Source: Guillardia theta CCMP2712
Taxonomy: Eukaryota > Protista > Cryptophyta
Direction: 5' to 3'
Assembly (NCBI RefSeq): GCF_000315625.1
Contig: NW_005434632.1
Location: 33,901 to 97,900 of the forward strand
DNA length: 64,000 nt
The first letter of the stretch is position 1. The number at the start of each line of letters is the position of its first letter. A program made the position numbers and the translations under genes. Below the pieces are notes generated by a model, which saw only the letters and a program-made list of their open reading frames with translations, had not been told where the DNA came from and ran no database searches. Positions 17,921 through 26,497 of this stretch are shown here, one piece after another.

Positions 17921-19450
17921 GTGGTGGAATCAAGCAGAACGAGACAAGAAGGTGAGAAAAAGAATGACAAAAAAAATCCAAAAAACAGAACAATACAAAC
18001 ATTCGACTTGATAGGGGAGATCCCCTGGAGTCTACGGGAAAACAATAGAGAGTACGGAGCAGCGGCGCTGCTCAACTCAGGAGAAGATGGATTTCTCTCT
18101 GAGGACGTTATGGAGGCATTAATCGTTGAGGTAAACCGCAATTTAGAACCAGCGGAAGACAGATTTCAAATAGCATGGCCCCAAGGCACGAGGTATGCCA
18201 ACGAGCAAACTAGAAACCAATTTGGGCTGCAGAGAGGGACCATTGTTCTCCCGAGAATAGTAGCGGGTTTGAGAGATCAGGAGGGAAGGGCACGGAGAGC
18301 AAAACGACTGCTAGCCGGGGCAGCTCAACCATTCTTATTCCCTTGCGTAGAGAACGGCAATCATTGGATTCTAATCGTGGCAGATGTTAACACAAAAAGA
18401 ATACACATCGTCGACTCGCTTAGCACGGCCCTTGAGAGAGACCTGGGGACAGTCAGAAGCCAAAGGGAGGCACAGTTTCAATTGGGGGGCGCACAGCGAA
18501 TGGACCTAGCATCACTCATGGCGACGATTATCACCGAGGCAATTAGCGATCAACAAGAACACTGTGACGACACGGCATGGAGGGCATGTGTGTCAACTGG
18601 GCTGCAACAAACAGACGGCTACAATTGTGGAATTTTCGTTTTGCTGCATCTGCTGCTGATCGCAAAGACACGAAGGAAAACACAACAACAAGATATCTTC
18701 AACACAGGGAGGCAACAAGGCGTCCCCCCCCATCAGCAATGGCTCATGCGAACAAGACATCTGCTGCTGGATGGGCTCTGGGGGGGGGGTATGGAACATG
18801 TGCACACGCGAGAAACAATACAACGCATCTGCAGAGCTCTACAGCACGCGCAAGATTCAGGTTACAAGGAATGGCAAGTTGCAGAGCTCACCATGGAACG
18901 TATACCTAACCGGATGGAAAGGCGAGAAGACGGCCAAGAACGCGCAGGCGATCTACAGGCGACCCAGGCATCTGAAGATGCACGGCTACAGGAGAGATTG
19001 GAAGACGAGCCAGTGACCACGACTGACAAGATGTGGCACCGATGCTCGCGCTCCCTCCGCCGCCTGTCCGTCCACGCGTCTCCCCGCGCTGCTCCCAAGC
19101 CTCTCAGCTTGCTTGCTGGTGTCTCTGCAGACCATCAGCCTTCACCCCCCCGCCCCCACCGTCTCCTACACTGCAGCAGCCTCTCTCTTCTTCCCTCTCG
19201 GATGTACGCCCGGCAGCTGGAGGACTTCGAGGAGCAGCAGGTCGCCTGCCGATCGCCGAGCTGCGTCACGTGCATGATGTGCAGTCTTGGGAGCATCAGG
19301 CGGCCAGCGATCGACCAGGGGGGGAGGCTGGAGGAAGGAGGGCTTCTTGGGGCGGTCAAGAGGGCCGGGTCAGGGCTTGGCCCATCCATCGACCGTGCGG
19401 GGAACTTTGTGATGGAAGGAGATAGAGCCCGATGCAAGAGCGCTCCTTGA
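17921..19450 (+). CDS. Ulp1/C48 SUMO-protease domain fused in frame to small Cys-protein copy B
   Basis: C48 triad motifs NHWILIVAD, IVDSL and QQTDGYNCG. The frame continues into MWHRC... (ATG 19031), identical to copy A. The ORF opens with GTG; the first ATG is near 18110. Confidence 0.7.
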   Translation: MVESSRTRQEGEKKNDKKNPKNRTIQTFDLIGEIPWSLRENNREYGAAALLNSGEDGFLSEDVMEALIVEVNRNLEPAEDRFQIAWPQGTRYANEQTRNQFGLQRGTIVLPRIVAGLRDQEGRARRAKRLLAGAAQPFLFPCVENGNHWILIVADVNTKRIHIVDSLSTALERDLGTVRSQREAQFQLGGAQRMDLASLMATIITEAISDQQEHCDDTAWRACVSTGLQQTDGYNCGIFVLLHLLLIAKTRRKTQQQDIFNTGRQQGVPPHQQWLMRTRHLLLDGLWGGGMEHVHTRETIQRICRALQHAQDSGYKEWQVAELTMERIPNRMERREDGQERAGDLQATQASEDARLQERLEDEPVTTTDKMWHRCSRSLRRLSVHASPRAAPKPLSLLAGVSADHQPSPPRPHRLLHCSSLSLLPSRMYARQLEDFEEQQVACRSPSCVTCMMCSLGSIRRPAIDQGGRLEEGGLLGAVKRAGSGLGPSIDRAGNFVMEGDRARCKSAP

Positions 19451-20277: not shown

Positions 20278-20871
20278 TGTCGACTGGGTGTGAGAGGAGT
20301 TGAGAGAAGGAGGGATGGATGGAGCAGGGAAGGGCTGGAGGATAAGAGGAAACAGAGGAGGACGGAGAGGCGAGAGAAATTAATAAAGGGGGAGACCCGG
20401 AGATATGATAAGGAGTCGTTTCACTTACAGAGGTCTCAGAATTGTCAGCAGTTGTTCACGGCTTTTTTTCTATGTAAGACCAGATGCACAAATCCAAACC
20501 GAAGTACACGAAAAAGAGTCTTTTCATCTCCTCCAGGTGTTAAGAGAACACCTGGCCGTGCGGCTTGAAATCATGAGCTAATGGCTGGCGAAGCACCTCC
20601 AGGCTAATAGAAGCAGCTGCCTGCATCCATCGGTTAGAAACAATCTGAGGCAAGCTCGATTCTAGCGCCTTCTTTTCATCATGACAATCAATGACTGACT
20701 GGCATAATCTATGAAACCACATGTTTTCGATAGCCGCCCCGTCCAATCCCAACGGGCACCTCTCAATGTACTCCGAAGTAAAAAACTGCCACGAACCGAG
20801 ATTCAATCGAACTAGCGCGATGACCCGGTGATGCTGGAATGACAGTCAACTCTGCGACTCTCATCAACTCA

Positions 20872-20986
20872 GCGTAACGTGCATCACGTCATCATGTGCC
20901 GTCTTGGGAGCATCAGGCGGCCAGCGATCGACCAGGGGGGGAGGCTGGAGGAAGGAGGGCTTCTTGGGGCGGTCAAGAGGGCCGGG
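20872..20986 (+). pseudogene. Fragment of the small Cys-protein gene
   Basis: Near-identical to about 19262-19369 (LGSIRRPAIDQGGRLEEGGLLGAVKRAG) and truncated at both ends. Confidence 0.8.
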
Positions 20987-21039
20987 AAGGGACCACAGCT
21001 GTGCATTGCAGGAGCAGGAGCGGCTCTTGATGGCTTCGT

Positions 21040-24000
21040 TTACAAACTCTGTCTATTAAACAAATGGTTTTTCCTTAGCCTGTGATGACCTTTGACTGCA
21101 TACCGATGGCTCTCGTCCCTGGCGAACCTCAACAGCAGCATCCCTGGCCTGTCTGAATCGAGTTCAAGAGGAGGGAGGGAGGGAGAAAGATACAGCTCCT
21201 CCTTCTTCTTTGCCAGCGCCACCAGCCTGCCAGCAAGATGCGTCATCGATATCTTCTGTAGCCCTTTAAGTGCAGCTGATAGCTGCCCTGCACCGCCGTC
21301 GACGAGGATGATGTCGGGGATGTCTTGTTCGTCAGCATCAGCGAACCTTCTGCTGATCACTTCCTCCATGGCTGCAAAGTCGTTCACCCCTTGCACGCTC
21401 GTGATCTTGTACACGCGATACAAGTGTCTCTCTGGCATCCCATCCACCAGTACGATTCTCGAGGCTACCGTAGCTGTGCCCTGGCAGTGGGAGATATCGA
21501 AGGCTTCGATCCTCGAGGGCTTCCTCCCAAGGCCCAGGAACTCTGCCATGTCACCGCCGGCTATTGATCGACTGTCCTGCATCTCGATGAACTTTGCTTC
21601 CGCCTCTGCGTTTGCGATGGCGAGCTCGATCGCCTTCTTGTCTTCCTTGGCGTGCTTGCCTCGAGTCTTCAACGAGCGGAGGGCGACCGGCTGGTCGAAG
21701 TTTGCCTGCAGCATACCTCTGACGGCTTCAGGGTTCGGCAGCGCCACCTGTATCAACATCAGGCGACGTGGGCAGAGGAGAAGAAGAGTGGACCTGAGTG
21801 AGCAGAACTTGTGGGAATTCGTCGCGCGGCGTGAAGGTGTAGTGCTCCTTGATCGCCTCCTCTAGCGCCAGGGCGAGAGCTTCTTCTCCGTGCTCCTTGT
21901 CCTCTAGCTTGGGGATGTCGAGCTTCAGCAAGGTTCTTCCCTTCACCATCCCGTTTCTGAGCTGCAGCAGCAGAGCGACACAGCTGGCATGAGAGGATGA
22001 GGAGGGTCGCGGAGACGCTACGGCCGTGATGGCAGCGACGTCTGTCGGAGGCGCGTGCGCGTCCCAGTCGAGGAACTCAAGCTCCTTCCTCACCGGATTC
22101 ATCGCGACAAGTTTTCTGACGTCGGCAGCTGCCGCCAGCTTCCCCTGCTCCTCGAGCTTCTCCGCAACCTCCAGGCCCCGCCCCTCTAGCACATCCAGGC
22201 ACTCAAGGACGAGCTCTTGGTACTCCTGCCTGCTCATAGTCTTGCCGTACATGACCTGAAAGCGAGACCGTCGCAGGCGGAAAGCGGCTTCGAGAAGGGC
22301 GAGAGTGGAGCGGAGGAGGGAGGAGTCAGTGTAAGGGCCGAAGTACCTGGCGCCGATAAGCGATTGCTGCTTGCGGGTGGTAGAGAAGAGACGGGGAAGC
22401 TCCTCGCCGAGGGTCAGGCAGATGAAGGGATAGAACTTGTCGTCTCGTAGCAGGACGTTGTAGGGAGGCTGCAGCTCTTTGATCAGTCGCGCCTCCAGCA
22501 GGAGGGCGTCTCGCTCTCCTCCAGGAGTCAGGATATACTCCACACTCCTCGCATGCTTCAGCATCGCCTCGATCCTCGGCGACAGGCCCCGCCCTCTGCC
22601 GGTGCTCGACCGCAAGTAAGACCTCACTCTCGTCTTCAGCCTCTTTGCCTTGCCCACGTATAAAGTGCGCAGTTGAGGTTGGAGGGAGGAGGAGGAGGAG
22701 GAGGAGGAGGAGGAGGAGGAGGAGGAGGAGGAGGAGGAGGAGGAGGAGGAGGAGGAGGAGATTTCTCCCTTAAACATGTAGACTCCCGGTAGGTTTGGGA
22801 ACGCATCCACCAGTGCCCTCAACCTCTCCAAGTTTTGCATCCGCTCGGTCGCCTCCTTTGTCGATATTTCTGCTGGGAAAAAACTTGAGAGAGAGGAGGA
22901 GGAGGAGAAATCGGAAAGACTGCTGTCCTCCTCCGTGAAGAACTCATTGGCAGAAGCCGCCGCGTCCTCCTCCCTGTCTTCTTCTCTAGGTTGCTGAGAT
23001 TCTTTCTTCCCTTCCTTGGGGATCTTTGAGCGAAACTCTCGCAGTGACTCGCGCTCGAGCTCGAAGAGAGACCGCATTTCCCTCCTGCTGACGCTGACAG
23101 GGCGCAGGCTGTGCTTCTCGTTATACAGCTGCTGCATTCTCCTCCTCCTGTACGTCTCCTCTATGCACTCCCTCATCGCTGCTGTCTCACGGTCGGCAAA
23201 GAAGATCGCCTTTCCCCTCTCATTCCTCGCCGCCCTCCCGATGATCTGGATCAGCGCACGGCAGGAGCGGAGAAAGCCCTCCTTGTCCGCGTCCAGCACT
23301 AGCACCAGCGACACCTGAGGCAAGTCGATCCCCTCCCGCAGCAGGTTCACCCCCACCACCGCGTCCAGCCCGCCCGACTGTAGCTCCTGCAGGACTTCAG
23401 CTCGCTCAACCGTGTTGAGACCTGAGTGGATGTAGCTGCAGGAACGTCAGACATGCACATCGCTGCTTGTCCTTCTCCTCGCCCCCTCTGCCCTTTTCGT
23501 TCCCCCTGTCCTCTTCTTGCCCACCATCTTCTCCCCCCCTCTCTCACTCTTTCCGCCCTCCCTGTAGCCCCGCATTCACCTCGCGTTCACATTGTTGTCG
23601 CAGAGCCATGCCGCCACGTCCTCTGCGTTTCGCTTTGTGAAGGCCATCAGCAGTACTTTGTCGCCATGCTCCTTGCGGGCTTGAATCTGAAAGCGGCAGA
23701 TCACTCAGAAGGAAACGATCGAAGCAGAGCCAGATAGAGAGGAGCGAGAAGGAGGCGATGGAAGGAAATGAGAAGAGAGCAAGGGGGAGGATGATGCAAC
23801 CTCTTCGAGCATGACGTTGAGCTGATTCTTGGTTGGTTTCACTTCGATCTCTGGGTCTAGAATTCCAGTTGGACGAATGACCATCTCCACAACACCGTTG
23901 TCCTGCTGCTGCTCCTGCTGCTGCTCGTATTCCCACACTTCACTCCCTTCTGAGACACCAGCCAACGTTTCCTCCTTGGCCCCTGGAGTAGCGCTGACGA

Positions 24001-25868
24001 ATAGGGTAGCTCCTATCTTGGACCAGAACTCCTCCTCTCGCAGAGGCCGGTTGTCTAGCGCGCTGGGCAGGCGGAACCCGTGCTTGATCAACGTTTCCTT
24101 GCGCGACCTGTCGGCGTTGTACATGCCGCGCAGCTGTGGGAGAGACACGTGACTCTCGTCGACGACGAGGAGCCAGTCCTTGCCCCCCTCGCCCCTCGTG
24201 AAGTACTCCAGCAGCGTCTCAGGAGCGTCCCCGGGATCCCGGAAGGAGAGGTGGCGGCTGTAGTTCTCGACACCAGAACATACGCCAGACTCTCGCAGGT
24301 GGACCAGATCCTCTTTGGTGCGCATCTCGATCCTGCTGGCTGCGTCCAGCTGCCCCTCAGTTCGGAGGACTCGGACGTGCTCCTCGAGCTCCTGCTCGAT
24401 GTTGAGGCACGCGGCCTCCATGAGCGACTTGGGCATGACATGGTGACGGGCAGGGTAGATGTTGATGCAGGAGAGGCTCTCCTCGCTGCCGCTCATGTCG
24501 CTTGTGCTTATTTCGACCAGAACGGCGTCGGAGAGCTGCAGGCGGATGGGACGGACCTCGTAAGGGGGCCAGAGCAAGACGTCCGAGGAGAAGGGGGAGT
24601 GGGACACGCGGAAGCAGCCTCTCTCCAGCTCCTCTGCCGGGCTCTCACACTCAGTGTAGAGAATCTCCTTGAGGAGCCGGCAGGCTCTCTCGATCGAGAG
24701 CTCATCGCCCACGTTCACCGTCAGCCTCGCCTTGAGATAATTTGCGGGAAGGCCGAGGCCGTAGATGCAGGAGACGGTCGAGACCACCACCACGTCCTCT
24801 CGCTCGAAGAGAGACTTGGTCGCTCGATGCCGCAGGGCGTCAAGCTCGTCGTTGATGCTCGTGGTCTTGGAGATGTAGGTGTCCGAGGAGGGCATGTAGG
24901 CTTCAGGCTGCGGAGCCCTTCAACACATCCACCAGAGGAGACAAGAGGAGACAAGAGCAACAGGAGGAGAGAGGAAGAGAAGATGGAAGCGGGGGAGATG
25001 TCAATGCACAAAGGAGAGGGGAGAGAGGGAAAAGGTAATCGACCTGGTAATAGTTGTAGTACGAGACGAAAAGCTCAACGGCATTCCTTGGGAAGTAGCT
25101 CTTGATCTCCCGAGCCAGCTGGGCAGCGAGGGTCTTGTTATGGCAGAGGATCAGAGTTCTCTTGCCATACGCTGCGATGATCTGCGCCATGGTGAAAGTC
25201 TTGCCTGTCCCTGTGGCTCCACGAAGGACCGTGTACTGGCATCCCTTCCGAAGGCGATCGAGAATCTTCTTGACAGCCTGTGGCTGATCCCCCGTGGGTG
25301 AGAAGGGAGCGTCGATCTCAAACTTGCTGCAGGAGTCGTCGGAGCTCGCGGGACCTCCGTTGCTGTGCCAAGCTTGATCCATAGTCTCCGACAGCGCCAG
25401 GTCATCCACCAGCATGTCGATACCTGGCATGCTCTCCGAGAGCGGGATCTGCTCCCTGCCCTGCTGCACATGTCCTTGCGTTTCGAGGTCATTCTCAAGG
25501 CTCATGCGCGACGCCCATCGCCTCTCTCCTGTCACGACCCATCCCCTGCTCCCTGATGGCCTCCAGCTTCGGGGAATAGCTCTGCGAACCCCCGTGAAGC
25601 TTGACGGCTGACGCACCTGCTTGTCATGGGTCACCAACTCGCACCTCCTGGAGAGGATAAACATGACCGAGTTCAGCCAGAGCTTTTGTCGAGCTACAAA
25701 AGCTGTCTTGTGAAGCGCATTCATTGGGCTTGATCGAGGAGGCAGCTCAAGGTAGGAGGACGCTCTCTGAGTGAGAGGTGCAAAAGAGGCCACTAGCATG
25801 TCGTGGCTGATCCCAAGAAGCAGCAAGAAACCTCCTCGACATACTGCCGGCATACCTGTCATCACCAT
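21040..25868 (-). CDS. uvrB-uvrC: UvrB-UvrC fusion excinuclease with N-terminal signal + transit-peptide-like leader (5 exons, about 1462 aa)
   Basis: Exons 25868-25044, 24907-23801, 23686-23580, 23435-21794 and 21747-21040 have GT-AG borders in compatible phases. UvrB motifs: [69 protein letters not shown]. UvrC motifs: [44 protein letters not shown]. Confidence 0.93.
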
Positions 25869-26497
25869 GTTGTAAGCAAGTTGACGTCCGATTGCAGAGA
25901 GATAGGAGGAGGAGAGCTTGAATGGCCACAGAAGATGAGCGATGGAGTTCTCGTACCTGACGAGCTTCAGACCCTCTGTCTCATTCCTCTCCTCTCCTCC
26001 TCCTCCTCCTCTCCCACAAACTTTCTGCCTCGACCCGTCGGCATGCCAAGGCACTTTGCACGTCAAGCAAGGTCACCGGGTAACTAAACTTTCAGGTCCG
26101 CCTCAGGGAGACACAGCGACAACTGTGAGTGGGGCGGGCCGGCAATGTGAGTTAAGTAATAAGTTTACTCAAGAGCATGACTGCTCTGATTGTACCAAAT
26201 TTTACTTAACTCGGAAAATCCCGTGTAGTAAATGAACAAAATCTGGTCGAGTGCGTAGTAAAATTGATCTCTTGCAACCTAAAACATTATTGTAGCCCCC
26301 AGTGACAGGATGAGTCATGTCTCGGTCAGAAGGACCCCCTTGTTTGTACTATATCGCAGGGGTGAGTACTGGAAAGCAAAAGTTTCAGTGACCGGCACAA
26401 TTCGAAACGATGTAAAATCGCACCGCTTATGTCATGCGCTGAAACGTAACCCAACGGCAGGCTATAACGTCGCCTTGACCTGCTCGTCCTCGTCCTC

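Follow-up and report, generated by a model that had tools for sequence, protein, structure and literature searches.

The closest described counterparts of the gene examined here, a UvrB-UvrC fusion gene of the cryptophyte Guillardia theta CCMP2712, are the separate UvrA, UvrB and UvrC proteins of bacterial nucleotide excision repair (NER). A survey of the GIY-YIG superfamily published in 2006 listed no eukaryotic UvrC (PMC1564403), a review of 2020 described NER as seemingly absent from organelles and flowering plants as encoding no UvrA, UvrB or UvrC (PMC6981420), and a 2024 paper in Genetics stated that "all eukaryotes lack UvrABC genes" (PMC11228841). The plant "uvrB/C" of plastid studies in Geraniaceae, AT2G03390, has a UVR motif only and is neither UvrB nor UvrC (PMC4824065). 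No description of a eukaryotic UvrB-UvrC fusion was found in the full-text literature searched, most subscription journals lying outside it, and the main text of the ochrophyte plastid proteome paper does not mention one; prior notice of the fusion by specialists is possible. The gene lies in a stretch of 64,000 nucleotides of contig NW_005434632.1 (RefSeq assembly GCF_000315625.1, positions 33,901 to 97,900), referred to below as the window, and all coordinates are those of the window unless another contig is named.

The Guillardia protein shares with bacterial UvrABC a complete UvrB core (motifs I, II and VI, the beta-hairpin, and domains 1a, 1b and 3), with 49–52% identity to cyanobacterial UvrB, as well as the catalytic residues of both UvrC nucleases. 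It differs from the bacterial system in that (i) it is one chain, (ii) neither half has a UVR domain, and the UvrC Cys segment and (HhH)2 (helix-hairpin-helix) tail are missing, (iii) its domain 2 is degraded, in a genome in which no UvrA was found, and (iv) the gene is nuclear and intron-bearing, with a predicted bipartite plastid presequence. Cho and other UvrC-like nucleases (PMC1564403) are likewise natural UvrC variants without the C-terminal modules; however, Cho keeps the Cys segment and is without the 5' nuclease, whereas the fusion loses the Cys segment and keeps both nucleases. The organellar TRCF/Mfd homologue of plants and AT2G03390 resemble the fusion in being nuclear genes derived from bacterial repair whose products are targeted to organelles (in the case of the fusion, by prediction), and Guillardia likewise has an Mfd-like gene with an RNA-polymerase-interacting domain, comparable to plant TRCF.

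The gene occupies positions 21040–26051 of the minus strand and consists of seven exons and six GT-AG introns; its corrected reading frame contains no stop across 1440 codons and encodes a 1440-aa product. Analysis of open reading frames (ORFs) together with Pfam matches (PF04851, PF17757, PF00271, PF12344 and PF08459) revealed four pieces in series: (i) a helicase N-terminus (GATGTGKT, YYNYYQ), (ii) a piece that carries DESH along with the UvrB interaction domain, (iii) an open frame of 543 codons in which Helicase_C and the UvrB family domain precede a GIY-YIG-like segment, and (iv) the UvrC RNase H endonuclease domain (PF08459, 145.5 bits). The preliminary description of this locus, made from the sequence without database searches, had a complete UvrB running without a stop into UvrC domains, with the junction inside exon 23435–21794. 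Both points are confirmed, the former by the Pfam and PDB matches and by the fold (TM score of 0.88 to 1ycz), the latter by a single open frame. When the exon (23434–21794) was used in a PDB sequence search, its first 165 residues matched UvrB residues 474–650 and its residues 257–335 matched the UvrC GIY-YIG domains 1yd6 and 1ycz; the protein junction therefore lies inside one uninterrupted frame. In the corrected protein the UvrB motifs are found at residues 195 (Walker A), 248 (hairpin), 503 (DESH) and 724 (motif VI), and those of UvrC at residues 875 (GIY), 916 (YIG), 1286 (EAFDISH), 1354 (DGGAGQ) and 1415 (RDESH). The stop codon (21040–21042), placed by sequence and alignment, follows the endonuclease domain by approximately 17 residues.

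Transcript contigs of runs X4, X5 and X7, which come from three different studies, were mapped onto positions 20700–26300. Six clean GT..AG skips are present in the contigs of all three runs, and these must therefore derive from spliced RNA. They correspond to intron 1 (25856–25956, 101 nt; joint 25852/25954, cut +3), intron 2 (25617–25667, 51 nt; joint 25614/25666, cut +2), which is in frame and takes out 17 residues, three introns within the UvrB part (24908–25043, 23687–23800 and 23436–23579), and intron 6 (21748–21793, 46 nt). The four GT-AG introns recognised earlier are thus all confirmed as joints, while two more had been missed. Record 2 of X4 (2733 nt) runs continuously from the 5' untranslated region (UTR) through all of UvrB and the linker to GVYMF of the GIY-YIG domain, up to 22769, and so crosses the junction, which shows that the gene is transcribed as a fused mRNA; record 1 of the same run extends from 22674 to 21049, resuming just past a (TCC)n run, with similar depth on both sides. 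The (TCC)n run itself (22675–22768) is in frame and free of stops.

The transcript contigs also corrected the start of the gene. ATG 25868, the start codon of the earlier model, lies within intron 1, and coding therefore starts at ATG 25853, the first in-frame ATG of the spliced mRNA, which an in-frame TGA precedes by five codons. The corrected model retains the leader LVAS|FAP, while the extension preceding the UvrB homology is shortened from approximately 180 to approximately 160 aa. Upstream of intron 1 is a 5' UTR exon (25957–26051, the minimum extent in the contigs; record 5 of X5 reaches 26051), whose translation contains an upstream ORF of 25 codons (MPTGRGRKFVGEEEEEERRGMRQRV; ATG 26044 to a stop at about 25967). 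The six spliceosomal introns, together with a eukaryotic nuclear neighbour, an Ulp1 protease (Peptidase_C48) encoded by a 509-codon frame on the plus strand (17921–19450), bear out the earlier assignment of the gene to the nucleus.

One further joint, 22907/23902, was rejected. It occurs in two X4 contigs, skips 994 nt, has AA..GT ends and a shorter side of 21 nt, and lies in GAG/TCC-rich sequence, which most probably reflects an artefact of assembly. The raw RNA run X21 yielded only 25 reads, all at 20700–21073, just downstream of the fusion stop, and was uninformative on the gene. On the plus strand, six of eight of these reads carry CT and not AA at 20952–20953, and 20940 is where the transcript contigs stop or change; this could be due to the transcript of a neighbour or to a difference between strains.

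The two halves of the protein were compared with the family models of UvrB (TIGR00631 and Pfam PF04851, PF17757, PF27431, PF00271, PF12344 and PF02151) and UvrC (TIGR00194). The UvrB helicase part (23084–25325; residues ~160–775), identified by Pfam, PDB, TIGR00631 and fold, spans the three internal introns listed above. SF2 helicase motifs I (GATGTGKT), II (DESH) and VI (GRAARN) are all present and occupy invariant columns in the alignment with bacterial UvrB, and the damage-verifying beta-hairpin is kept (YYNYYQPEAY, compared with the consensus YYDYYQPEAY...SINDEIDxLRH). The helicase and hairpin motifs are thus all retained, and over exon 4 the UvrB part is 50–52% identical to cyanobacterial and other bacterial UvrBs. 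When the exon-6 product was modelled by AlphaFold together with 22 family sequences, domain 3 was folded with confidence, with a root-mean-square deviation (rmsd) of approximately 2 A to 1t5l. In contrast, domain 2 (PF17757), through which UvrB interacts with UvrA, reaches only 23.8 bits against a cut-off of 22.9, and its FFGDE motif is replaced. Identity to the bacterial consensus is 35% in this domain of the Guillardia protein and 26% on average in the fusions, compared with 53–62% in the other domains; among bacteria, used as the reference, it is 61.5% in domain 2 and 71–77% elsewhere in UvrB. Judged by these alignments, the UvrA-binding domain 2 is strongly degraded across the fusion members sampled. 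No UVR domain (PF02151) was found in the segment after the UvrB part at E values up to 10. The two halves are joined by an acidic, Ser-rich linker (22874–23023) that is predicted to be disordered (predicted local distance difference test, pLDDT, below 50; residues 138–187 of the exon product).

The UvrC half begins with the GIY-YIG nuclease domain (22430–22861), supported by PDB matches, alignment and a confidently modelled fold (rmsd 1.9 A to 1ycz). Alignment to 1ycz and 1yd6 revealed that it keeps GVY, YVGKA, RVRSY, LLEA and YNV, with the catalytic Tyr, Tyr, Arg, Glu and Asn; we take the residues kept to correspond to Y29, K32, R39, E76 and N88 of the Thermotoga maritima protein. The (TCC)n run encodes approximately 28 Ser in the loop that links the GIY strand to the YIG strand (pLDDT below 50, residues 229–251). 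This pure poly-Ser insert is lineage-specific: in P0291, the nearest relative, the same loop contains a long insert of a different sequence, and the other members have none. Next comes a middle region (21794–22426) composed, according to the alignment and model, of a helical part, a short UVR-like remnant and a second, non-catalytic fold resembling RNase H and endonuclease V (EndoV); it is modelled at a pLDDT of 84–97, with weak matches to EndoV folds. The RNase H-like endonuclease domain, which performs the 5' incision in UvrC, follows at 21094–21543 and contains EAFDISH, NDF, VDGGAGQ and RDESHRY; EAFDISH, VDGGAGQ and RDESHRY align with the bacterial motifs, and the Asp/Asp/His motifs are kept. 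The catalytic residues of both the UvrB and the UvrC halves are kept.

An alignment of seven fusion proteins with five bacterial UvrCs revealed what the fusions have lost. The Cys block of approximately 20 residues (C..RPCL..GRC..PC) of the five bacterial proteins is a gap in all seven fusions, and the (HhH)2 tail is also missing from all seven, the bacterial UvrCs continuing for approximately 60 residues further (the Chromera fusion carries an unrelated C-terminal extension). PF02151 gave no match in the UvrC middle region at E values up to 10; a short helical remnant of the UVR hairpin aligns in the Guillardia protein, and none does in several of its relatives.

Proteins imported into the stroma of complex red plastids are marked by an aromatic residue directly after the signal peptide (the ASAFAP motif; the +1 Phe rule of cryptophytes), while periplastidial proteins are without the aromatic residue and mitochondrial proteins without the signal peptide. 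The Guillardia protein starts with a signal-peptide-like segment of 23 residues (25785–25853), for which a heuristic predicts cleavage at LVAS|FAPL, and continues with a transit-peptide-like presequence that begins with Phe and is interrupted by intron 2 (25326–25784). The first 87 residues past the predicted cleavage contain 14 K/R, 5 D/E and 17 S/T. The leader is therefore of the signal peptide-then-Phe type proposed earlier, and the same type of signal recurs in the orthologues, with predicted cleavage at SALA|FST in Cyclotella, VSA|FSA in Thalassiosira, ATA|FSV in Amphora, AAA|FVV in Seminavis, VVA|FSL in Nitzschia, VRA|FRA in Mayamaea and SYA|FLP in Chromera, and with Trp at +1 in Epithemia and Pseudo-nitzschia. 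A crude script that looked for a hydrophobic core, then small-x-small and F/W/Y/L, was positive for 32 of the 72 complete N-termini of the family, compared with 10.7 shuffled sequences and 8 internal segments. All named sources of the fusion are plastid-bearing lineages. On this basis, the fusion protein is predicted to be imported into the plastid stroma.

The remainder of the pathway was sought by six-frame searches of the 87.1-Mb, 669-contig assembly with hidden Markov models (HMMs). The preliminary description had suggested looking for leader-bearing UvrA, UvrD and Mfd. UvrA was not found: PF17760 and PF17755 gave no match, and TIGR00630 only generic ABC matches of 27–32 bits. The same method strongly recovered the split UvrB (exons at 1e-107), UvrC and Mfd genes. 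The earlier proposal had left open whether the enzyme works with UvrA or without it; the second branch is now favoured, because the genome is without a recognisable UvrA and the UvrA-binding domain 2 is degraded.

TIGR00194 (UvrC) exceeded its threshold at the fusion locus only, while TIGR00631 revealed a second UvrB copy, on contig C33. It is part of a UvrD-UvrB fusion (G000:C33:302878-307587; L019 5879-9909 + L020 2-2587, minus strand, from six-frame and Pfam analysis), in which an 862-codon frame leads from a complete helicase of the UvrD/PcrA type (PF00580, 180 bits; PF13361, 212 bits) without a stop into a UvrB N-terminus, the motifs being AGPGSGKT ... VHASKGLEF ... YVACTRAR and then GATGTGKTF ... 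YYDYYRPEAY. This paralogue is also without a UVR domain, and its domain 2 is degraded and contains insertions. Approximately 2 kb upstream, on the same strand, are exon-like pieces of the C-terminal half of UvrC (G000:C33:309500-311750; L020 4501-6750), comprising an RNase H endonuclease (RIIEGYDISH, VLIDGGRGQ, RDEAHAFAVYHHR) and HhH-like motifs (LIEKFGSIEALG), which the whole-genome TIGR00194 search had missed. They may form a gene of their own or belong to a triple fusion with UvrD-UvrB. A relative present in an NCBI genome and in metagenomes, P0303 (66% identical), has the same order of UvrD and then UvrB and the same upstream UvrC pieces (L107); the ORFs upstream of its UvrD-UvrB have no Pfam match, but tblastn finds the pieces of the UvrC C-half there. 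The assembly also contains an Mfd/TRCF-like gene (G000:C15:544816-546433; L104 1498-3642, minus strand, identified by TIGR00580 and Pfam) with a CarD_TRCF RNA-polymerase-interacting domain and a translocase module (DEAD, Helicase_C). It matches TIGR00580 at model positions 292–813 only, and the UvrA-binding (UvrB-homology) / UvrB-interaction module was not seen in its main exon.

We then asked how widely the fusion occurs. The preliminary description drew its inference for this alga, and in this respect it has to be qualified. In a phmmer search with the junction exon against 1.84 billion representatives, proteins of approximately 950–1400 aa matching both halves ranked at the top, and word-indexed searches yielded over 100 full-length proteins whose Pfam domains follow the same order (UvrB, GIY-YIG, UvrC endonuclease). 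The named members come from (i) diatoms (Seminavis, Cyclotella, Cylindrotheca, Nitzschia, Pseudo-nitzschia, Thalassiosira, Epithemia, Amphora, Mayamaea), (ii) the bolidophyte Triparma, (iii) Chromera velia, (iv) the red alga Rhodosorus marinus and (v) the green alga Pycnococcus provasolii. The same fusion is encoded by several MMETSP transcripts marked as complete. In one relative it occupies a single ORF of 1401 codons, and the flanking genes encode a protein kinase, a ubiquitin hydrolase, a MINDY deubiquitinase and a mitochondrial carrier. Over the junction region, the Guillardia protein shares 36–48% identity with the named members; its nearest relatives are the metagenome protein P0291 (61%) and an MMETSP transcript. 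PF02151 and the HhH families were found in none of the listed fusion relatives, whereas the bacterial UvrBs compared all carry PF02151 and PF17757. A look-up of a fusion relative in the ESM Atlas returned only bacterial UvrB clusters, at 0.86.

Some members are already deposited under automatic names. The algal "Excinuclease ABC subunit B" entries of Chromera velia (A0A0G4F0M2), Seminavis robusta, Cyclotella cryptica, Nitzschia inconspicua and Rhodosorus marinus have the same domain order and the same losses, fall in the same clade and carry presequences similar to that of Guillardia, and the Pycnococcus provasolii protein XRB01906.1, filed as "exonuclease uvrABC", belongs to the same fusion family; compared with these, the Guillardia protein adds the poly-Ser insert in the GIY-YIG loop. 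In a quick IQ-TREE analysis of 76 UvrB parts, all 22 fusions, including that of Guillardia, are placed on one side of a branch with an SH-aLRT (Shimodaira-Hasegawa approximate likelihood ratio test) value of 100, which suggests one fusion event for the family. The survey of other algae and the tree of the B half recommended in the preliminary description thus yielded, respectively, carriers among diatoms and in Triparma and a single fusion clade: the fusion is an old and widespread algal family, and is not special to Guillardia. The eleven best of 600 tblastn-confirmed prokaryotic UvrB matches are all cyanobacterial (49–51% identity), the rest not exceeding 47%. In the same tree P0305, a UvrB filed under a metagenome-assembled genome (MAG) of Gemmatimonadaceae, falls within the cyanobacterial clade, together with Gloeobacter (SH-aLRT 99), which may reflect either a mis-binned MAG contig or gene transfer.

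We consider it probable (approximately 0.6) that the protein is a stromal, UvrA-independent, single-chain excision nuclease, both the localisation and the activity being predicted from sequence. The UvrB part would clamp plastid DNA in the stroma and verify the damage by means of its beta-hairpin, and the tethered UvrC part would then cut on both sides of the lesion, 3' by the GIY-YIG domain and 5' by the RNase H-like domain. The flexible covalent linker may stand in for the UVR-UVR coiled coil by which bacteria recruit UvrC. More speculatively, loading onto DNA without UvrA could take place at transcription or replication bubbles, or through an Mfd-like factor or the UvrD-UvrB paralogue, and a helicase of the UvrD type could release the excised oligomer.

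Several points weigh against this interpretation. Bacterial UvrB normally needs UvrA for loading at lesions, and the HhH tail of UvrC contributes to the 5' incision; a protein that has neither may act on other substrates. The absence of UvrA is based on a single 669-contig assembly, and the targeting call on N-termini read by eye and a crude heuristic, those of the green (Pycnococcus) and red (Rhodosorus) algal members not being diagnostic. The 94-nt poly-Ser repeat (22675–22768) is bridged by none of the transcript contigs, the mapping skipping repeats there. Moreover, the quick tree separates the eukaryotic UvrBs, which sit on long branches, from every bacterium sampled (SH-aLRT 93) and does not nest them in the cyanobacteria; although the best matches are cyanobacterial, an endosymbiotic origin of the family is therefore likely rather than demonstrated.

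The main rival explanation is that the protein, while targeted to the plastid, cuts DNA structures (forks, flaps, bubbles, R-loops) rather than lesions, as a helicase-nuclease that has left excision repair and serves, for example, in replication, recombination or the degradation of damaged copies. Bacterial UvrBC can cut certain junction and bubble substrates without UvrA, and such a role would fit the lack of UvrA in the assembly, the degraded domain 2, the loss of the Cys segment, UVR and HhH, and the presence in the genome of a UvrD-UvrB fusion adjoining a gene for the UvrC C-half. However, the beta-hairpin and both nuclease active sites are conserved in a very old family, as dual incision requires, and the helicase and hairpin regions are still 53–62% identical to the bacterial consensus, so that we regard structure cutting as rather unlikely. 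The opposite explanation, a canonical UvrABC system whose ordinary UvrA was missed by the assembly or the searches, could appeal to the 669 contigs, in which a missing match is no proof of absence, and to PF17757 scoring just above its cut-off (23.8 versus 22.9 bits). It is nevertheless very improbable, given that three independent UvrA models returned only generic ABC matches where UvrB, UvrC and Mfd were recovered, and that domain 2 and both UVR domains are degraded throughout the family.

The protein might also act elsewhere: in the mitochondrion, in both organelles, or in the periplastidial space of the cryptophyte with its nucleomorph genome. In favour of this, targeting was judged by eye, the N-termini of Pycnococcus and Rhodosorus are ambiguous, and plant TRCF is reported to be dual-targeted (PMC11228841); but Phe or Trp at +1, directly after a signal peptide, is found repeatedly in members from cryptophytes, diatoms and chromerids, and every named source of the family bears plastids, which makes another compartment quite unlikely. 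That the gene is an artefact (bacterial contamination, two adjacent genes merged, or a decaying pseudogene) is scarcely credible. The unbridged repeat, and exon matches to TIGR00631 and TIGR00194 that stay below the whole-protein cut-offs, could be cited in its favour. Against this stand six GT-AG introns that are spliced out in contigs of three runs, each from a different study, a junction within one open exon and one contig, 1440 codons without a stop, orthologues of the same architecture in transcriptomes and as a single ORF, and eukaryotic neighbours; contamination or a merged model was therefore rejected.

Beyond the single-chain excision nuclease favoured here for Guillardia, we tentatively suggest a wider scheme, which is possible though not the more probable outcome: in red algae, green algae and lineages descended from red secondary plastids, the plastids may run a bacterial-type but UvrA-independent NER made of fused modules (UvrB-UvrC, UvrD-UvrB next to a UvrC C-half, and perhaps an Mfd-like factor for loading), which would probably have come from the cyanobacterial endosymbiont and have been lost later in land plants.

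The Guillardia gene and its more than 100 algal orthologues contradict the statement that "all eukaryotes lack UvrABC genes" (PMC11228841). The carriers include ecologically dominant algae, namely diatoms and bolidophytes as well as cryptophytes, chromerids, a red alga and a green alga, and the old question of how bulky lesions are removed from plastid genomes under high light or UV thereby becomes testable, diatoms being transformable. The family also represents a natural experiment in the design of a repair enzyme, in which the interface for UvrA has decayed and a tether takes the place of UVR-UVR docking, so that it could reveal how UvrB is loaded and UvrC positioned without their usual partners. 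If the wider scheme is correct, this would be the first excision repair of the canonical type documented in an organelle, and a natural demonstration of UvrB-UvrC working without UvrA.

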